A stretch of DNA of 63,926 bases, filler included, from Octopus bimaculoides (Eukaryota), in NCBI RefSeq assembly GCF_001194135.2. It is 4 parts of 4 records of this genome, joined end to end, with 100 filler letters (N's around TTAATTAATTAA, not from the genome) between each part and the next. Parts side by side here need not be neighbours in the genome. Positions count along the whole stretch, not along the records: positions 1 to 20,679 come from NC_068995.1; 3 more parts are not named here. One strand, given 5' to 3'. Shown here piece by piece: positions 1 to 11,939 of the stretch (positions within the stretch are counted from its first letter, which is position 1; the number at the start of each line of letters is the position of its first letter). Both the position numbers and the translations under genes were made by a program. The notes under the pieces are model-generated. The model was given only the letters and a program-made list of their open reading frames with translations. It had not been told where the DNA came from and searched no databases.

Positions 1-52
<52 letters not shown>
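1..52. repeat. (TC)n microsatellite
   Basis: Pure TC dinucleotide run at the window start. Confidence 0.98.
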
Positions 53-55
<3 letters not shown>

Positions 56-359
56 GTTGATTGTTTTCAACCATCACCAGCACCACCATCATCACCACCA
101 CGACTGCCATACACGCACCATTCGGTGCAAAGGAAAAGCACTATTTAAAATAGTAATCTTTATCATCTTAATCAAAGGACAGAAAAACAGAGAGTCCCTT
201 CGGTGAGTTAATTTCAGACTCCATATTGTACATATAAGAAGCCATCCAACAGCACAGGGAGGAAACATAATCCTAAATTTTTGCGATGCAACTACAGATT
301 AAGGGAGGAATAAAGAAAACATAGTAATATTCCCTTTAAGAAGAAAAAAAATCAAGTTG

Positions 360-1674
360 AAAATGTGGTTTTGACTAATTTCGTTATAATTGTTTATTTG
401 AACAGCAGCTTGGTCATTTCCTTTCAGCGTGTACTTGATGACATACTTAACTAACCTCACTGAGGCAACGATTTCAACGTTGCAATGGCATTTGAATGCT
501 CTTAAAAGAGTTTCATTATAAGTTACAACTCATTTGTTGTTGATTGTTTTTCCATTCTTATAAGATTCAATTCTTCCCATTGCAACTGATTTTCGTCTAT
601 AAAGAGGATAAGAATCTTCTCCACAGACAATACTTTACAAGTATTATTTGGGAAATCTCTCGGAGCATGATCCTTTCTTCCAGCATGGAGAATTTGCATT
701 ACAATATGAACCATGTATCTTATGAGCAACGACTAAATCATGCAGTTCCTTATCTGTTGGTGGGTCTGGAATTTCTGTTTGTATATAGTCGTCAATCTCA
801 TTTGCTCTTATATTGTTTAGCAAACAAAAAAGGGCATGCAAATGTGGAAGACCACGTTTTTGATATTCAACAGTATGAGTATGTGCTTTGACTTCACCCC
901 AGAGTTTTCTCATGACAATCAAGACCATAAATACGTGTCTCTTCAGTTGGAAAACTCTTGCAATCAGATCTGGCCTGTCGGATGCCACCTATCCAGGAAA
1001 AAGATTTTGAGTAATTTCTAGCCGTTTGAAATTACACGTAAGTGTAATGAACTACAATGGTGTTCTGTGTCTCTTCAAAATTTCCATGGCATTCATCTGC
1101 ATTTCAGCCATGTATCTTGGACCTCCAGTAACTGTTGAAAAAGTAAGACCTTTTTCCAACGTCATTAAAATCATCATTGTCGTTTATAGCATCCTTTAGT
1201 CCCTTGTATGTTGTAATTCTTAAATCAGCTTGATGTTGTATCAAAAATGAAGGGGTTATTAAATTCGATTTTTGCAGCTTGACCGACCAAATACTGTTGG
1301 AATAATCGGTCGCCTCAAAGAATACGATTGAATTTGCTTTGATGATTCATTATTCTATAGGCATAATATTTCTTAATTGTCAATCGCTTATTGTTTGTCA
1401 TATTCAAGTTACCTTCAGGAAAAAAAGAGAACGTACTGCAATGAGTCATACGAACGATGAGTTACCGAAATTATGGTTAGTTCACCTCTTCTTTCCTTCA
1501 AGACGATATTCCTAGACGATGCATCTTGATTTGTATTGGGTAAAATATCAGAGACTTCATTTGCAGTTGGTGCATTCCAACGCTTCTCATGCTCAGCCTT
1601 CTGATCTCACGAATAACACATCTAACGTGTCTCTGAATACTTCCTTTGCCATTTTGAACGAAACAATAATATAT

Positions 1675-1719
<45 letters not shown>

Positions 1720-1763
1720 TCTCTCTCTCTCTTTCTCTNNNNNNNNNNNNNNNNNNNNNNNNN

Positions 1764-1817
<54 letters not shown>

Positions 1818-2660
1818 ACTGTTTCAATTCGTTCTACTATTCTTCTTTCTAGCCCTGCTTCGTTGTTCAATTCTCATCCTTTTTGTAACTAAGTTTAGTT
1901 GAACAAATTTTGCTTGCTCATCGGCCTCTGGAATTAGTGGACCCAGGAAATAGTAAATTTGTCCATGAATTATGACCGAGGGATTGTAATTTTCAGGTTG
2001 CCGACTCTCTTTGCAATTAAAAGATGCCATTTGGAAAATACCATTGTACTGCCTGGCATATTTTCTGAAAATTTTCCCCACATCTGTCTGACCTTCAAAT
2101 AATTCCTTCATTTCTGGTGGTAAGTCAGTTAACGGTGCTAAATTGACTTTTCATTTCACACAGCAAAAATTGGTGGTTTCACCTGGAAATTTGAAAGCTC
2201 TACAATGGGGGGCATATTTGATTCATTTCTTCAAGAGAGACATCAATATCTTGATGGATGCGGAGTCGACGATGTTGGTTTCGAAGTCGAACCTAAGTCG
2301 TCTCTGTTCTTCATTTTCATTCAAATCAACTTGCTTTTGTCTCATTCGATCTTAGTCTAGTCTTTCAACCCTTTGATCATAATTTCCATTTAAATGAATG
2401 TGTCGATGTCTGGTTTGATCTTGCTCTAGTCTTTCAGCCCTTTAATCATAATTTTCGTTTTAACATCGGATTTGTTGTCTTTCCAATCTACGCTGTCTCT
2501 GTTCTTCAGTTTCAAGTTTTAATCGCAGGGTTAGAAAGAAGAATCGTAGAATGAATTGAAACAGTTTTGAGAGAGGGAGAAATCCATATATTGCTTCGTT
2601 CAAAATAGCAAAGGAAGAAACTGTAAGAAAAACAGGAAACTGAAAAGAAGTCATAATTCA
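360..2660 (-). mobile_element. Decayed Helitron RepHel 5' half (N-terminal Zn-finger region plus Rep HUH domain), in GALNT intron 3
   Basis: Manual minus-strand translation gives, in order: CPHCRAFKFPGETTNFCC, YARQYNGIFQMASF...HGQIYYFLGPL, EHEKRWNAPTANEV, RLFQQYLV..AAKIE, TGGPRYM, Rep motif I FITLTCN..DRPDL, motif II VEYQKRGLPHLH, and motif III VKYVIKYTLKG. Multiple stops and frameshifts. Confidence 0.93.
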
Positions 2661-3230
2661 AAGCTCAAAAACAGAATGAAATAAAATGAACAGAAAATAT
2701 TATTGAAATTTTTAGTTATTTGGTTTTAAATTATTTTAATACCAAAGTTTGATTTCTGTTAATATATTTCATGAATTTGTTTTAAATAGTAAATTCACTT
2801 CATGATTTTGTTTTAAATGGTAAATTAACTTTTTCGTGCCAATTTCAATGTTTAGATAAAACAAAATTGCAAAATATTGCAGCAAAGTTGCGTGATAGTG
2901 GTGTAGACGTAGCTTGCAGATCATCATATAATTTGCTTTATTCTTCTCTTCTGTTTTACTTTGACATGCGCATTGCGTTTATATTCTTCTCTTCCGTTTC
3001 ATGAATATAGTGTGCACATGCGCATTGTGTGTTCATACTTCGCTTTCGGGTTCCTATTCAAAATTGTTTATATATCACATGCATCTCCCGAACGTGCATT
3101 TCTAAGGAGCGCTTCGCGCTCCGATAGTTGTGAAGGCTCTTGCTAAAATAGTTAAAATTTCTATTAGTTTCTTTCACAGAAAATGAATATGACATACATT
3201 ACCATTTCAAGTTAATCAAGTGATACTCAC

Positions 3231-3408
3231 CAGTTTATATTTACTTCCATGTGACTTTCTAAAATACATACTACTTCAGCCGTAACATATTTGATTGCTT
3301 CCACGCGAGTTTTTATCAAGCCACCGCGCTCTTTTAATCGAATTAACTTCACAAGATCTGTATCAAAATGTTCTTTGATGTAAATATCCAAGTCTTCCTT
3401 GTAAAATT
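3231..3408 (-). CDS. GALNT: Polypeptide N-acetylgalactosaminyltransferase, coding exon 3 (GT1 motif second half; DXH motif reads ESH)
   Basis: Acceptor ttttgcag and donor TG|gtgagt; 178 nt, phase 1 to phase 2, matching the phase-1 end of exon 2. Encodes (E)FYKEDLDIYIKEHFDTDLVKLIRLKERGGLIKTRVEAIKYVTAEVVCILESHMEVNIN(W), aligning to the family pattern VKxIRxxxRxGLIRARxxGAxxAxGEVLxFLDSHCExxxxW. Confidence 0.92.
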
Positions 3409-4729
3409 CTGCAAAATTATAAATGCACAAATATTTCAAAGAAAGCAGATTAAACGCAAAAATTCACCCTTTTCTATTTACTTGTTATTGGACTGTGTCT
3501 ATTCTAACAACCATCAGTATTTAACCTGTATTGAAAGACAAAATCGACCGACATGGGATTTGAATGCAAAGCACCAATGGATGCACCAAATGCCGCAAGA
3601 TATTTTGTCCTATACTCTGATTCTGCAAATCTACCGTCCTAATGTATATATAATAGGGGAAAGTGTAGTTAGATTGAATGTGGGTTAAGTTTTAAAACCT
3701 CTTTTTGTTTTACAGAAATAAAGAATTTGGTGAGGACTTAACTGCCTCTTTAAAAGAGCCGTTTATACTATTTTTCAAATTGGTATCAAGTTGATACAGA
3801 ATTTTTTTACTATACAAAAAGCTTTCTATATTTTATACACCTTTTAGTAAAATTTGTGCTTCTTAGAAATATTCAGTAATACCATACTCAAGAACAAATG
3901 ATTTTGTGTTTTTATTGTTTAGCAAACTGTAATCAGAATGGGGCAGGAAATAATTTATCCGTTTCGTTTTGAGTTGTGTACTCTCCACATGTTATACTGA
4001 AGTCATTAGTAGATCAGGCGAGCTCAAGTATGATGTGAGACGTTAGTTGCAAGTTGATGATGAGGTTTAGTGGAAATATGTGTCCAACCAACTCATATAG
4101 AAGAATTTGAATATATGAGTCGATATTGTCTGTATAATACTCAAATCTTGGATAGAGGAGAAAAATGCAGAGGAAGACTAGATACTTCATTTTCTTAAAA
4201 GACATAAGAAGAGCAATGTCGAATCTCTTAAATATATGAGAGAGGGGTATGTTTTTAATGTTTACAGGAAAGGAAAATGTACACCATTATTATATTGCAA
4301 TGGTTGATAAAATGAATGAAAATGGAGGGGTAACAAGAAAAATGTTGAGAAATATTCCAAGCAGAGATTTGATGTGCTCCATATTCATAATGCTAATTAC
4401 TGTTAAAATATGCACACCTGAACGTGAGGACGCCGTATTTTTTCTGCGTTCCATACAACAATGAGAGCACAAGGCATTGCCTTTACAACCTTGCGTTTCA
4501 TGTTGACCTATAAGCCAACAAGCAAGATTAGAGACAAGGATGTGTTGTGGGCTAACAGTAAACCTTCTTTATTGGTGACAGACCAAAGTGACAATAAGGC
4601 CTAGTAAAAGCCACCTAATTAAATATATAATTAGTAATGGAAATTGAAATGATACCAATCTAATTGGTTACTTGTGATCGCTTCAAGCAATTCACCCTTT
4701 TGTACAACAGCACTGCATTGGACAAATAT

Positions 4730-4811
4730 AGATACATAATGCATACATAAGTACATACATAAATACATACGTACATACATACACATATAATACATGCATA
4801 TATATATATAT

Positions 4812-4868
<57 letters not shown>
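4730..4868. repeat. Compound (TACA)/(TA)/(CA) microsatellite
   Basis: Direct inspection. Confidence 0.9.
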
Positions 4869-4872
<4 letters not shown>

Positions 4873-5252
4873 AATGAGGCAGCTAGGAAGACAATAAATG
4901 TCATTAAATAGGACTGAGCGTAATAGGACACCTACACTGCTAGAAATAAGAATTAAAGTGCTCTATTGCTGCTAAGAGCTCAAATGCTCTCCTGCTGTTG
5001 TCAACGCATATGTATATGNNNNNNNNNNNNNNNNNNNNNNNNNNNNNNNNNNNNNNNNNNNNNNNNNNNNNNNNNNNNNNNNNNNNNNNNNNNNNNNNNN
5101 NNNNNNNNNNNNNNNNNNNNNNNNNNNNNNNNNNNNNNNNNNNNNNNNNNNTTATTAATTAATCAACATATTAACAAATAATTGTTCTATTTCTCAAATA
5201 AGATTAAAATTACAAAATATATATGAATATATAATTTTGTATTTTAAATACC

Positions 5253-5326
5253 GGATCTTTTTTAAAACGGGAGCCACATTTTTCAAACATTAATGAAAAA
5301 TGTGGCCCCCGTTTTAAAAAAGATCC
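5253..5326. repeat. 33-bp near-perfect inverted repeat (hairpin, 8-nt loop), foldback/MITE-like
   Basis: GGATCTTTTTTAAAACGGGAGCCACATTTTTCA - AACATTAA - TGAAAAATGTGGCCCCCGTTTTAAAAAAGATCC; one mismatch. Confidence 0.85.
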
Positions 5327-5371
5327 CTATTTCGGAATATACAGAATATATAAATATGTTTACGATGCGTG

Positions 5372-5658
5372 TGGGTGGAGGCGCAATGGCCCAGTGGTTA
5401 GGGCAGCGGACTCGCAGTCATAGTATCGCGGGGCATTGTGAGTGTTTATTGAGCGAAAACACCTAAAGCTCCACGAGGCTCCGGCAGGGGATGGGATGGT
5501 GGCGAACCCTGTTGTACTCTTCCACCACAACTTTCTCGCACTCTTACTTCCTGTTTCTGTTGTACCTGTAATTCAAAGGGTCAGCCTTGTCACACTGTGT
5601 CACGCTGAATATCCCCGAGAGCTACGTTAAGGGGACACGTGTCTGTGGAGTGCTCAGC
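5372..5658 (+). mobile_element. tRNA-derived SINE (5' part; runs into a gap)
   Basis: tRNA-like head GGAGGCGCAATGGCCCAGTGGTTAGGGCAGCGGACTCG with an A box; the B box appears deleted. Body resembles an octopus SINE (recalled). Confidence 0.7.
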
Positions 5659-6795
5659 NNNNNNNNNNNNNNNNNNNNNNNNNNNNNNNNNNNNNNNNNN
5701 NNNNNNNNNNNNNNNNNNNNNNNNNNNNNNNNNNNNNNNNNNNNNNNNNNNNNNNNNNNNNNNNNNNNNNNNNNNNNNNNNNNNNNNNNNNNNNNNNNNN
5801 NNNNNNNNNNNNNNNNNNNNNNNNNNNNNNNNNNNNNNNNNNNNNNNNNNNNNNNNNNNNNNNNNNNNNNNNNNNNNNNNNNNNNNNNNNNNNNNNNNNN
5901 NNNNNNNNNNNNNNNNNNNNNNNNNNNNNNNNNNNNNNNNNNNNNNNNNNNNNNNNNNNNNNNNNNNNNNNNNNNNNNNNNNNNNNNNNNNNNNNNNNNN
6001 NNNNNNNNNNNNNNNNNNNNNNNNNNNNNNNNNNNNNNNNNNNNNNNNNNNNNNNNNNNNNNNNNNNNNNNNNNNNNNNNNNNNNNNNNNNNNNNNNNNN
6101 NNNNNNNNNNNNNNNNNNNNNNNNNNNNNNNNNNNNNNNNNNNNNNNNNNNNNNNNNNNNNNNNNNNNNNNNNNNNNNNNNNNNNNNNNNNNNNNNNNNN
6201 NNNNNNNNNNNNNNNNNNNNNNNNNNNNNNNNNNNNNNNNNNNNNNNNNNNNNNNNNNNNNNNNNNNNNNNNNNNNNNNNNNNNNNNNNNNNNNNNNNNN
6301 NNNNNNNNNNNNNNNNNNNNNNNNNNNNNNNNNNNNNNNNNNNNNNNNNNNNNNNNNNNNNNNNNNNNNNNNNNNNNNNNNNNNNNNNNNTATATATATA
6401 TATATATATATGCATACATACATACATACACACATACATGCACGCGCGCGCACACGCAACAAGTATGTATATGAATATGTACATCAATATGTACTGGTAT
6501 ATATGTTCCTTTCCAATTTGCTTCTTTAGGTATGTAGATTGATTTATGAGCAGAAATGAAGTAAAGATAAGATTAAAATGTAATAAAATGAAAATAAAAT
6601 ATAAAGAATATTAAAAAAAAGTAAAAATAAAATTAATATAAAAATGATAAGTAAAAATAAAATAAATATATAGTAAATAAAGTAGAAATAAAATAAAATA
6701 AAATGTACGAAAGTGAAATAAACTGAAATAAATTTATGTACATGTATGTATACGTGTGTGCTTATATATGTGTGTCTATACTGTATATGTATATA

Positions 6796-7452
6796 CAATA
6801 ATCCCTCGTCTATCGCAGGTATTACATTCCAAAACCCACTGCGATAGGTGAAAATTGGCGAAGTAGAAACACTATTCTAATCTTTTATTCTTTTATTTAT
6901 TTCAGTCCATGCTGGAGCACCGCCTTTAGTCGAACAAATCGAACCCAGGGCTTATTCTTTGTAAGCCTAATATTTATTCTATCATCTCTTTGCCGAATCG
7001 CTAAGTTACGTGGACGTAAACACACCAGCATCGGTTGTCAAGCGATGCTGGGGGGACAAACACAGACATACAAACACACACACAAAAAGGGAAAAAGACA
7101 AAAGAACAACAACAAAAAACATCAGCGTGAGGACGTGATACAGGTTGTGTTACTAGACGCTCGGGAAAGGAAACGACGAGCCTCTTTCTGTTTCCGTCAA
7201 CCAAACCACTCGGAAGGCTTTGGTCGATCCGAGGCTATAGTAGAAGACACTGGCCCAAGGTGCCACGCAGTGGGACTGAACCTAGAACCATATGGTTGGC
7301 AAGCAAGCTACTTACCACACAGCTACTCCTGCGTAATTTTTTGAAATTATTTTTCTAATTTGTACATTTTATTTTATTATAAATGCAACACAACACTACG
7401 GAGGAATCGACGTAAGTTTCAATAATAAACCGCGATAGGTGAACCGCGATAT
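6796..7452. mobile_element. pogo/Tigger-like MITE interrupted by a SINE
   Basis: TA|CAATAATCCCTCGTCTATCGCAGG left terminus; internal CGCGATAGGTGAA repeated at about 6841 and 7430; the right terminus is partial. Confidence 0.5.
6885..7332 (-). mobile_element. CORE-like tRNA SINE, full length, with a foreign insert in its spacer
   Basis: Reverse complement of the 61663-62072 element; spacer 7085-7173 is non-microsatellite sequence. Confidence 0.88.
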
Positions 7453-7729
7453 ATATACTAAACAAGTATGGATACCTTTATTTATGTATTATTGTGTGTT
7501 TTCTTCCTAAGTTATTATATTGGTTCTTAAGTATGCATTCATTATGGTGACAGGTTAATTAATTATATATTATTTATATTTAGATACAAAAGTATGTTTA
7601 ATACTTTTGCGATCATGTATGCTCACGTTTTTATGTTTATACACGTGGATGAGTGTGTAGGCGTATATATTATCTATTTATATATTAGTATATGTGTGTG
7701 TATGTGTGCGCGCGCGCGTATATGTATTA

Positions 7730-7931
7730 TTCTTTTACTTGTTTCAGTCATTTGACTGCGGCCATGCTGGAGCACCGCCTTTAGTCGAGTAAATCAACCA
7801 CAGGACTTATTCTTTGTAAGCCTAGTACTTATTCTATCGGTCTCTTTGCCGAACTGCTAAGTTACGGGGACGCAAACACACTACCATCGGTTGTCAAGCA
7901 ATGTTGGGGGGACAAACACAGACATACAAAC

Positions 7932-7980
<49 letters not shown>

Positions 7981-8740
7981 NNNNNNNNNNNNNNNNNNNN
8001 NNNNNNNNNNNNNNNNNNNNNNNNNNNNNNNNNNNNNNNNNNNNNNNNNNNNNNNNNNNNNNNNNNNNNNNNNNNNNNNNNNNNNNNNNNNNNNNNNNNN
8101 NNNNNNNNNNNNNNNNNNNNNNNNNNNNNNNNNNNNNNNNNNNNNNNNNNNNNNNNNNNNNNNNNNNNNNNNNNNNNNNNNNNNNNNNNNNNNNNNNNNN
8201 NNNNNNNNNNNNNNNNNNNNNNNNNNNNNNNNNNNNNNNNNNNNNNNNNNNNNNNNNNNNNNNNNNNNNNNNNNNNNNNNNNNNNNNNNNNNNNNNNNNN
8301 NNNNNNNNNNNNNNNNNNNNNNNNNNNNNNNNNNNNNNNNNNNNNNNNNNNNNNNNNNNNNNNNNNNNNNNNNNNNNNNNNNNNNNNNNNNNNNNNNNNN
8401 NNNNNNNNNNNNNNNNNNNNNNNNNNNNNNNNNNNNNNNNNNNNNNNNNNNNNNNNNNNNNNNNNNNNNNNNNNNNNNNNNNNNNNNNNNNNNNNNNNNN
8501 NNNNNNNNNNNNNNNNNNNNNNNNNNNNNNNNNNNNNNNNNNNNNNNNNNNNNNNNNNATATATACATATACATATATACGACGGGCTTCTTTCAGTTTC
8601 CGTCTACCAAATCCACTCACAAGGCTTTGGTCGGCCCGAGGCTATAGTAGAAGACACTTGCCCAAGATTCCACGCAGTGGGACTGAACCTGGAACCATGT
8701 GGTTGGTAAGCAAGCTACTTACCACACAGCCATTCCTATG
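7730..8740 (-). mobile_element. CORE-like tRNA SINE whose (TA)n spacer spans a gap
   Basis: Tail at 7730-7980 and head at 8580-8740 both match the 61663-62072 element, in the expected order and orientation. Confidence 0.88.
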
Positions 8741-8824
8741 TTTATATATATATTTCGTTCTAAAGTTATTTCATAGATCTTAAGCGTATATGCAATTTTT
8801 TTCTTCTTGCCTTTAACCCTCCAG

Positions 8825-9385
8825 CGCGGAGTATAGGCCACTCATAATTGAATTCCATGTCACATAATTTCTCGCTTCTGTACTTATACTCTGCCATGAA
8901 TGTCCCCCTTTCTTCTAGTTCCTTTTGTGTTGATCTACGCCATGAGTTCTTAGGCCTACCTTTCTTTCTATATCCATCCGGATTCCACTGTAAAGCACTT
9001 TTCGCTGCATTTGGTGTGTCTTTTCTAATTGTGCTTCCAATCCACTTCCACTTTTTCTTAAATATTTGCTCCCTACTCGAAACTTGATTTGTTCTTTGTC
9101 ATAACTCCATATTGCTTATGTGTTCGGGCCATCTAATTTTAAGTATACTACGCAAGCATCTGTTGATGAATGATTGTATTTGCTTATTTGGCTTAACTGT
9201 TGTTCGCCATGTCTCAGCCCCATACAATAACACCGCTTCTACGTTAGTGTTAAAAATTCTTTTTTTTGTTCTTTATTGAAATTACACTTGCGCTCCATAC
9301 CTTTTTTTAACAGGTGAAAAGCGGTCCTTGCCTTACTTATTCTCGTCTTAATATCTTCGTCGGTGCATATTATTGAAAGATTATC
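8825..9385 (-). mobile_element. RTE-clade LINE, 3' RT fragment
   Basis: Minus-strand translation: RIFNTNVEAVLLYGAETW...RCLRSILKIRWPEHISN...KWKWIGSTIRK...ALQWNPDGYRKKGRPKNSWRRS. Confidence 0.9.
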
Positions 9386-9649
9386 AAAGTAATTATGTTA
9401 ATGATCATATTTATTACTAATTATTATATTATAGGATTATATATTTATACATTTAGATATATGTTGGGATGGTGTACTTAGTATTCATATTTGAGCTTAC
9501 TCTCTACATTTAGGATTATTACGTCGATTTGGTGTATTACGTCATCAAGATTGATTTCATTGATATATATATAGTATCTATCTAAATTAAATGTATAATA
9601 TTATACGGTTAATTAATAGGGATCAGTACTCAATTTTATTATTATCATC

Positions 9650-10700
9650 ACTATCAAACTGATTTTTAAGTATTGTATAATCTAACATAACATGGTGTAT
9701 GTTATTTTGATTATATTATGTTAGGTTTGTAAGTACAATTATACTAAGTTATACTAATTATACTTAAATTTTAATTTATATCTTCCTAAAATTTGTATTA
9801 AAATTAAATTGTATTATATTATTTGGTTAATTAGTGAATGTCAATGCTCAGCATTGTTATTACTATTATTAAGAATATATTTAAATATTACATAATGTAA
9901 TGTGGTACATATTATTTTTATTTTTGTTTATGCTAATATCCTTGTATGGTTAACATCTATGCTTGGATTAAAAGTAGTTATATTATCCGATAGATAGTAA
10001 AGGTTCATGTACTCTATTATTATAGAAATGAAATCCAATCATTATGTAATATAATATAATATAGTCTATGCTATTTATATTTGTTATTTCCAATTATTTT
10101 TATTCATGTTGATTTTTACTATTCAGGGTTTTTAATGTTAGTTTTAATTTGTTATGATTACTCAGATTATTAATACGTTTAAGATTTGTATTGGGTTTAT
10201 GGTATGGTTCATATTTACTAGTTACAAGATTAAAGTTAATAGCTAAAAAATTAACCTATTTATTTTCTTTTTCAATAGAGATTGAGAGACCATAATTTTT
10301 TTTTAAATTATGTAATTTTTTTCACACAGTTCCAATTTTCTATTTGATGGATTTTTAACTAGAAACAGCTCATCATCTTTATATAGTCCGCCCGTTATTT
10401 TAGGGAATTCATTATTGAATTCATGTAGAATGTATATGCCCACTATGTCCTTAACTTGGACTGAGTCCACGGACCCCATGGTGATGTCAAATGAATTATA
10501 TGAGCCCTTTCTAACCCAATATTTATTATCAAACTTAATCACTGATTTTCTGGCATGTAAAATAACATTTATTTATTTCGTGTTTAAGTCAGTCTTTTAG
10601 CGAAAATAACTGCTTTATTCAGAATTATCGGATTAATGGAAGAGTAATAGTTGTCAATATCAACCTGTAAGAATTTTAATTTGTATGGAATAAGCAGAGC
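9650..10700 (-). mobile_element. Penelope-like element RT, decayed
   Basis: KFLQVDIDNYYSSI, FDITMGSVD...GGLYKDD, GLSISIE...VNFLAINFNL...YEPYHKPN...SNH; the downstream part is very AT-rich and only weakly translatable. Confidence 0.82.
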
Positions 10701-10934
10701 AAGAGCACACACGAAGACGGAAAATGTCGCTGAAGATGTCACAGATGTGTGACGAAAGATTTCCGGACAATGGACATGATTTAGAATAAGAACAGTAATA
10801 AACGAGTGAAGAACGAATATATAGTCCGTATGTCTATTTGGCAAAAAAAAAAAATTACCATCTCGAAATACAATATCTGTTTCAACACACGATTTTGCAT
10901 CAGGAATCTTGCAACACAAATTCATAACATTCTT

Positions 10935-11402
10935 TTACTCTTTTATTTGTTTCAGTCATTTGACTGCGGCCATGCTGGAGCACCGCCTTTAGTCGAACAA
11001 ATCGACCCCAGGGCTTATTCTTTGTAAGCTTTGCACTTATTCTATCAGCCTCTTTTGCCGAACCGCTAAGTTACGGGGACGTAAACACACCAACAGTGGT
11101 CATCAAGTGATGGTGGGGNNNNNNNNNNNNNNNNNNNNNNNNNNNNNNNNNNNNNNNNNNNNNNNNNNNNNNNNNNNNNNNNNNNNNNNNNNNNNNNNNN
11201 NNNNNNNNNNNNNNNNNNNNNNNNNNNNNNNNNNNNNNNNNNNNNNNNNNNNNNNNNNNNNNNNNNNNNNNNNNNNNNNNNNNNNNNNNNNNNNNNNNNN
11301 NNNNNNNNNNNNNNNNNNNNNNNNNNNNNNNNNNNNNNNNNNNNNNNNNNNNNNNNNNNNNNNNNNNNNNNNNNNNNCTACTTACCACATAGCCACGCCT
11401 GC
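10935..11402 (-). mobile_element. CORE-like tRNA SINE, centre lost in a gap
   Basis: Tail at 10935-11118 and the head end (CTACTTACCACATAGCCACGCCTGCG) after the gap. Confidence 0.85.
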
Positions 11403-11939
11403 GCCTATTATCTGATATATAGTATTGTATTACAGAAAATTTTAATTTTCGCTTTGTTGTATCATGAATATAGTTCCGTTAAATCAGATATGTATTTGCA
11501 TATAAATGCAGACATTCCAGGTCAGTAGAAATATATGAAAACAAATAAATATTAATGTGACCATTCTCGTCTTCAGATGCAGTCTACCTAATATTGTGTA
11601 CTACCAACTACGAATTAATGAAGAAATCATACTAAAATTGGTAACCCCGAAGTCTCTACACACTAAAATGATCACCCAACGAAGAAAGAAAGAACATCTG
11701 CAAATATCGTCAGCACGAAACTGACCCTGATAAACCTGATTAGGCGATAAACACACTACAATGAGGGTTCGATTCATCAACATAACTTGATATCCTTAGC
11801 AGCAAATTTGGTGTCACGACAAATAAACTTAATGAAACTGAATGCAACAAAATAAACTGGTGTGGTTAAAGAGAATTTCTACGTGCTTACTGAATTTCTT
11901 CAGACATTTTACTCTACACCCTTCTGAAACGACATATTT

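Follow-up and report, generated by a model that had tools for sequence, protein, structure and literature searches.

Does a GalNAc-transferase remain an enzyme when the aspartate that binds its catalytic metal is replaced by glutamate? To our knowledge, the Asp of the Asp-x-His (DXH) motif is regarded as an invariant Mn2+ ligand in every enzyme by which mucin-type O-glycosylation is started. The window analysed here, a stretch of 63,926 nt joined from four parts of the Octopus bimaculoides genome, contains on its minus strand part of a gene in which the codons GAA AGT CAC (3251–3259) encode Glu249-Ser250-His251 where the family has the Asp-x-His ligands. In family GT27, the essential Mn2+ is coordinated by the Asp and His of DXH, a C-terminal His, UDP, and water (PMC11074326, PMC6994419, PMC7185993). 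The identity of the gene, the reality and distribution of the substitution, and the constraint acting on the protein are considered together here.

Gene structure and family membership

Comparison of the O. bimaculoides and O. sinensis genomic loci indicated that the gene contains ten coding exons; the window covers exons 1–3, which encode the N-terminal 258 residues and, like all features of the gene given below, lie on the minus strand. The coding part of exon 1 (15758..16182) runs from Met1, with the start ATG at 16182–16180, to the first two bases of Gly142; its open reading frame (ORF) and GT donor were read directly, and a hydrophobic signal-anchor (residues 7–24, about 16111–16164) is located in it after a short cytoplasmic tail and before the stem. 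Exon 2 (13713..13882), with an AG acceptor and a GT donor, encodes the start of the GT-A catalytic domain (CKNQ...) and the UDP-binding VDD (D193-D194, 13726–13731). Exon 3 (3231..3408, EFYKED...ERGGLIKTRVEAIKYVTAEVVCILESHMEVNINW), whose splice sites were also read directly, encodes the remainder of the GT1 motif and the metal-binding motif; a GLIRAR-type motif, GLIKTR (codons 228–233, 3305..3322), lies within it. In the metal-binding motif, codon 249 is GAA (3259–3257), codon 250 is AGT, and codon 251 is CAC (3253–3251), and the peptide reads VVCILESHMEVNINW.

As the initial annotation had stated, all three exons have an open frame in the correct phase and canonical splice sites. They end 2, 1, and 2 bases into a codon, the frame is unbroken over both junctions, and GT–AG borders are present at all exons in the window. 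Junctions 1–2, 2–3, and 3–4 were found in RNA contigs of relatives, designated here by letters. For intron 1 (13883..15757, 1875 nt, GT..AG on the coding strand), the joint 13882/15758 was seen in RNA contigs from organisms D and H; organism I shows a variant of this joint. Intron 2 (3409..13712, about 10.3 kb) contains several N gaps and microsatellites; the exon 2–3 junction was seen in RNA contigs, and the spacing between the two exons is identical in the chromosome-level O. bimaculoides assembly. The first 3.2 kb of intron 3 occupy positions 1..3230, and exon 4 is located outside the window, about 8.2 kb downstream of exon 3. Exon 3 contigs from the RNA of organisms B, D, and H stop at the exon borders, their overhangs corresponding to exon 2 (...ATCATTATAGTTGACGACAATAGTGATTTG) and exon 4 (...LQPLLVEIMK), and in the relatives' RNA the exon 3–4 junction reads ...NINW directly followed by LQPLLVEIMK. 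A 1350-nt contig of organism H contains exons 1-2-3 and about 500 nt more. As for the RNA-seq check that the initial annotation had proposed, the RNA of the relatives is spliced as predicted, whereas no O. bimaculoides reads fell on exon 3 in samples of about 6% from three RNA runs. Expression in this species is weakly documented: its RNA gave one 151-nt contig inside exon 1, and database models exist.

Several repeated sequences can be noted in and near the introns. In intron 1, two stretches (about 14296–14556 and 15253–15339) are covered to a very high depth in each of the Octopus runs, by contigs of which many are partial or have loose ends, as would be expected of dispersed (SINE-like) repeats common to the genus. 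In intron 2, two similar translated copies (...GFGR[SP]EAIVEDT[GC]PR[CF]HAVGLNLEP[YC]GW...) at 7200–7344 and 8600–8709 on the plus strand flank N gaps and are probably a repeated element. Intron 3 carries a fragment of a Helitron helicase-like N-terminal domain (644–988, minus strand; Pfam Helitron_like_N, 2.9e-15), and the adjoining ORF 1824–2111 on the same strand has no Pfam match. Long trinucleotide (ATT)n/(AAT)n microsatellites (16183–16260 and 16293–16500) are located immediately 5' of the start codon.

The assignment to the GT27 GalNAc-transferases, made in the initial annotation, was borne out by profile and structure searches. The Pfam family Glycos_transf_2 was matched at 8e-16 by the translation of exons 1–3 and at 1.8e-23 by the full model, and Glyco_transf_7C was also matched. 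A phmmer search against solved structures gave GalNAc-T1, T4, T10, T7, T9, T12, and T2, with T1 at 3e-30 for exons 1–3, and the best match of the full model was GalNAc-T1/13 (PDB 8v9q, 1xhb; E = 6.8e-71). In the phmmer alignments with GalNAc-T1, T4, and T10, E249 coincides with the Asp, and H251 with the His, of FLDAH, FLDCH, or FLDSH; together with the direct reading of the codons, this upholds the replacement of the DXH Asp that had been reported. The sequences IIVDDNSD (D193, D194) and ERGGLIKTR (R226, R233) are present, and their columns are invariant or nearly so. The Gal/GalNAc-T motif and the third metal ligand (WGGENLELSWRVW...CSHFGHIAR) were found in the two O. bimaculoides protein models, P0010 and P0174, in alignment with T1 and T4; the coding sequence for WGGENLE and the C-terminal His lies beyond the window, in exons 5–6 of the O. 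bimaculoides locus. The kept catalytic residues, in P0174 numbering, are D193/D194, R226, H251, W355-GGENLE, the C-terminal His383, and R386. A type II topology was recognized by eye, from MEQRLR, YLILLVVLVVIVNILVTL, and a low-complexity stem. The product would be a type II Golgi-type membrane protein in which an anchor and a stem precede a GT-A catalytic domain and a ricin-type lectin domain. By every defining feature tested, including the catalytic domain, it is a GT27 member except for the strict DXH motif, which retains its His but has Glu for Asp, a conservative change that leaves the carboxylate in place; of the lectin domain, which the O. sinensis orthologue has, exons 9 and 10 were found in O. 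bimaculoides.

The gene is already present in databases under the NCBI name GALNT13 and as UniProt A0A0L8G2G5 (O. bimaculoides, 566 aa; model P0010), which an exhaustive HMMER search showed to be identical over residues 1–258. The RefSeq model in the chromosome-level assembly (P0174, 'GALNT13', 543 aa) has the same N-terminus as exon 1. The O. sinensis orthologue (P0175, 'GALNT13-like', 600 aa) has a ricin lectin domain (Ricin_B_lectin, 4e-11). The O. bimaculoides models have no lectin domain; lectin exons 9 and 10 lie past the end of both and are intact (Ricin_B_lectin, 35 bits), as are exons 4–7. The downstream motif His, which the initial annotation had singled out for inspection together with the ricin domain, is present. 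Lectin exons 9 and 10 were found, and exon 8 was sought in the O. bimaculoides locus and not found; a 1.9-kb N gap lies between exons 7 and 9 (38160–40104 of the O. bimaculoides locus L007) and probably hides it. The final exon of the RefSeq model has no O. sinensis counterpart, and lectin exons 9 and 10 are further downstream; the stretches concerned are L007 41689–41991, 45856–45993, and about 50250–50390. The annotated O. bimaculoides protein probably does not have its true C-terminus. A reading of decay based on the old model P0010, with a 95-aa insert, an absent 18-aa segment, and no lectin domain, was rejected, the insert and the absent segment being annotation artefacts corrected in P0174 and the lectin exons being located past the model's end.

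The initial annotation regarded the gene as a lineage-specific paralogue, and this part of it was not supported. Among the best 120 of 637 matches, the Octopus proteins are just the models of this gene and its O. sinensis orthologue; the next matches in that set are transcriptome proteins with 58–60% identity, followed by gastropod and bivalve proteins with about 45–59%. Given these matches and the clade motifs GLIKAR, DSHMEVNIxWLQPLL, and GHIARSQPYxFP, the gene looks like the sole Octopus orthologue of a mollusc-wide GalNAc-T subfamily. Members of this subfamily (Haliotis, Patella, Lottia, Mytilus, Physella, and others) have 50–60% identity in the catalytic domain and the same domain order, and share with the octopus protein the motifs GLIKAR, xSHMEVNIxWLQPLL, and GHIARSQPYxFP; unlike it, they all have Asp at the DXH position. 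At the 77 positions conserved in at least 90% of sequences, the O. bimaculoides and O. sinensis proteins have changed 6 and 4, respectively, the median being 1. Some mollusc relatives are automatically named 'inactive GALNTL5-like' and yet keep every motif; the name appears to derive from similarity and not from evidence of inactivity. With mammalian GalNAc-T1/13 (PDB 8v9q, 1xhb), the octopus protein shares the GT1 motif, WGGENLE, the C-terminal His, type II topology, and probably the ricin lectin domain, but the identity is about 40% and Glu stands for the DXH Asp. Specific to the subfamily in this comparison are DSHMEVNI-W, GHIARSQPY-FP, and Tyr for the His of FHNE.

The O. sinensis orthologue is likewise a 10-exon gene, with 84% identity (BLASTP) and dS of 0.079. 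Both Octopus proteins have the departures F148, M153, I191, and A236. O. sinensis differs in GAC (Asp) at the motif and at two sites that are Thr in O. bimaculoides, its own residues there being Ser168 and Ala233.

Reality and distribution of the Glu-x-His motif

An error of sequencing or assembly at codon 249 would be the simplest explanation of the glutamate, and it can practically be dismissed. Contigs from three independent DNA runs show 0 differences over 3100–3560, the chromosome-level O. bimaculoides assembly is identical (298/298), and 31-mers specific for GAA were found at a share of 1.00 in O. bimaculoides runs of nine samples from four studies. The latter test used a 74-nt stretch in which the sole O. 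sinensis difference is the GAA/GAC base; five 31-mers were sampled and all were found. The DNA runs and both assemblies thus rule out an assembly error; the raw-read confirmation of GAA that the initial annotation had asked for comes from the contigs and k-mers of these runs.

Among the 150 nearest representatives of 50%-identity clusters, 143 have Asp at the DXH position. The 144 that align cleanly comprise these 143 and a sole exception, the O. bimaculoides protein with a clean Glu-x-His; the remaining non-Asp rows are gaps, truncations, and misaligned model ends. In a second search, among aligned members of the subfamily and other GT27 relatives, Asp was found in 107/107 and His in 106/107. 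Glu does not occur at this position in any of the approximately 250 other GT27 sequences examined, and it can be argued from this that Glu is normally selected against.

Within the genus, Glu was also found in six other Octopus taxa (organisms B, C, D, E, F, and G). Words specific for GAA are at a share of 1.00 in organisms B, C, D, and F, D being represented by four DNA runs from two studies. For organism B, the 67 nt that an RNA contig covers include the five sampled words, at least one of which almost certainly spans the GAA site. In organisms E and G, no change is listed at 3257 and the other differences of the contigs are accounted for; organism G has a synonymous CAC to CAT change in the His codon. 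Not all relatives keep ESH, however: in the genome of O. sinensis the motif begins with GAC (Asp). Six exon 3 mismatches each were counted in two RNA contigs, X26 (labelled D) and X27 (organism H); O. sinensis likewise has six, one more than the DNA of organism D, and the two contigs probably carry GAC; the listing of contig differences omits changes less than about 30 nt from an alignment end, and GAC in X26 and X27 would sit 28–29 nt from the end. Thus, of the comparison across paralogues suggested by the initial annotation, ESH is kept in six further Octopus taxa, but Asp is present in O. sinensis and in the mollusc relatives.

The direction of the change can be approached from the neighbouring positions. 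O. sinensis and the Glu-bearing organism D have derived states in common at 3304, 3371, and several intron positions, while organism C, organism G, and a group of organisms A, B, and E are placed outside this pair. In cephalopod-like and mollusc sequences further removed, the residue is Asp. The most parsimonious course would be a change of Asp to Glu in the ancestor of the Octopus group followed by reversal to Asp in the lineage of O. sinensis, a scheme that we infer from run labels, k-mer shares, and the mismatch count of the RNA contigs. A long-lived polymorphism or introgression is the alternative to reversal.

A similar pattern can be noted at codon 168 (13804–13806), where Ser is invariant in the family. 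The codon is ACT (Thr) in O. bimaculoides, TCT in organisms B and E, and AGT in organisms D, H, and I; each of the two Ser codons is one step from ACT, which suggests that the conserved Ser was lost and then regained, in parallel with Asp/Glu.

The initial annotation also pointed to GLIKTR as a departure from the family. The motif is indeed present at 3322–3305, but it is not an anomaly, GLIK(A/T)R being normal for the mollusc clade. Its columns contain Lys in 19 and Thr in 16 of 150 sequences, and the mollusc relatives read GLIKAR or GLTKAR. Codon 232 (3308–3310, GLIK-x-R) encodes Thr, Ala, Ser, or Cys among close Octopus taxa, all within the family range of Ala, Ser, Thr, Gly, and Cys. The Lys is typical of the mollusc subfamily, and the Thr is derived within Octopus, other taxa having Ala, Ser, or Cys.

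Constraint on the reading frame and the conserved core

If the gene were in early decay, its function lost or being lost in Octopus, Glu249 would be one of many substitutions brought by drift, and the open frame would be a matter of time. Some of the data agree with such a course. The differences listed across congeners in exons 1–3 give a non-synonymous to synonymous ratio of 46:17, or 51:20 with further changes, which is near the neutral expectation. Many conserved residues have been departed from: in exons 2–3, 10 of the 31 positions conserved in at least 80% of sequences are changed in Octopus, equal to the highest number among 146 sequences with a median of 2. The absence of exon 3 reads from the three sampled O. 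bimaculoides RNA runs (about 6%) and the odd ends of the database gene models point in the same direction, but the latter are explained by assembly gaps. The dN/dS of about 1 suggested by the exon 1–3 counts was superseded by a whole-gene genome comparison with an intron benchmark, the lists behind those counts being incomplete and exons 1–3 including the fast stem.

This comparison of O. bimaculoides with O. sinensis, over 560 aligned codons, gave dS of 0.079, dN of 0.048, and dN/dS of 0.61 (stem 0.90, catalytic 0.51, lectin 0.56); the overall value of about 0.6, a measure sought by the initial annotation, is in our judgement high for the catalytic domain of a GalNAc-T. The introns and flanks, over 12,049 aligned positions, are 8.1% divergent, with a transition/transversion ratio of 1.66, and contain 11.5 indel events per kb, 23% of which are multiples of 3. 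Against decay, the exons are only 5.2% divergent, two coding indels were seen, both in frame, where about 19 would be expected under neutrality, and no stop codon was found in the 560 aligned codons; the exon 1 indels of the relatives (12, 9, and 6 nt) are all in frame as well. The constraint also follows the conservation of the family. The ratio of the non-synonymous rate to the intron rate is 0.13 at the 77 positions conserved in at least 90% of sequences (P = 4e-5), 0.42 at positions conserved in 70–90%, and 0.58 at the rest, and just two of these 77 most conserved positions differ between the two species, through S168T and D249E. Correctly spliced mRNA contigs are available from organisms B, D, H, and I, and the downstream exons found in O. 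bimaculoides (4–7, 9, and 10) show none of the disabling mutations by which the initial annotation would have recognized a recent pseudogene. Early pseudogenisation is largely refuted by the evidence of indels, stop codons, and the conservation gradient, and we consider it very unlikely.

The ORF and the conserved core are kept by purifying selection, while the overall constraint is weaker than usual; the gene is maintained, as had been suggested, by the evidence of its intact frame, its deficit of indels, and the slow conserved core. When replacements are polarised with outgroups, 10 fall on the O. sinensis side and 13 on the O. bimaculoides side. With such similar numbers, the relaxation belongs to the Octopus gene as such and does not follow from Glu.

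Possible consequences of Glu249 for catalysis

Replacement of the DXH Asp by Asn in GalNAc-T1 strongly reduces or abolishes activity, and so does replacement of Asp by Glu in the DXD motifs of other GT-A enzymes. If these effects are a correct guide, Glu249 may be disabling; a literature search for mutants of D209 or D-to-E mutants of the DXH motif gave nothing usable. The octopus protein could then be a maintained pseudo-enzyme, in which Glu249 abolishes productive binding of Mn2+ and UDP-GalNAc and the protein is retained by virtue of a function other than catalysis, for instance the binding of sugars or peptides via the cleft or the lectin domain, or action as a chaperone or partner of another GalNAc-T. 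In agreement with this, the Asp is invariant in the other relatives examined and is a direct Mn2+ ligand (PMC11074326, PMC6994419), and the ORF and core have been maintained despite the relaxed overall constraint. Inactive GT-A relatives with biological roles also exist: GALNTL5 (GalNAc-T20) and COSMC have no transferase activity and yet are biologically needed (PMC12443989, PMC11655647, PMC7185993), and they would serve as the model of an inactive member of a transferase family.

The likeness is limited, however. Among known pseudo-glycosyltransferases, COSMC is without whole motifs, neither DxD nor xED being left in it (PMC7185993). The octopus protein has a single, conservative ligand change and keeps its lectin exons; of the marks of a GALNTL5-type pseudo-enzyme, an absent lectin domain or the disappearance of entire catalytic motifs, none was found in it, all motifs but one Asp being kept. 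GALNTL5, for its part, is not known to have a lectin domain. Moreover, the return of Asp in O. sinensis is hard to explain if the metal site is irrelevant. A pseudo-enzyme is in our opinion possible but unlikely.

We favour instead, with about an even chance of being right, a working, weakly constrained, and possibly weakened GalNAc-transferase with a Glu ligand. The carboxylate of Glu249 would take over the coordination of the metal and UDP with an altered geometry, and this form would probably have a reduced efficiency or a shifted metal preference. The change of Asp to Glu may have been nearly neutral or slightly deleterious and may have been fixed in a gene less constrained than is usual, with Glu reverting to Asp in the O. 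sinensis lineage. The protein is read as still catalytic because the carboxylate is kept together with every other ligand and motif, the core is under purifying selection in the Glu lineages, and Asp is back in O. sinensis.

The Glu might also be of advantage in itself, if it shifts metal preference or donor handling favourably and the difference between sister taxa in Asp and Glu reflects divergent selection. Glu has been retained across several speciation events, in at least seven taxa, with the surrounding active site conserved. No adaptation-specific signal was found, though; no co-varying change in exon 3 separates the Glu-bearing organism D from the Asp-bearing O. sinensis, and the whole gene looks relaxed and not driven. 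Such adaptive retuning seems improbable to us.

In its boldest form, a competent E-x-H site with shifted metal or donor use would make Glu/Asp in close Octopus species a selected toggle of the initiation of O-glycosylation. This suggestion is a long shot; if true, the protein would be the first natural EXH GalNAc-transferase, and the orthologues would form a pair for dissecting the metal site. A protein that proves simply weakened or dead would exemplify relaxed constraint of a common kind. The novelty lies in the naturally occurring E-x-H variant, in its presence across several Octopus taxa, and in the sister orthologue with Asp. The Glu protein and the near-identical Asp orthologue of O. sinensis form a natural pair for probing the need for Asp in this family, and the case bears on the use of family-motif rules for calling glycosyltransferases 'inactive' in genome annotation.
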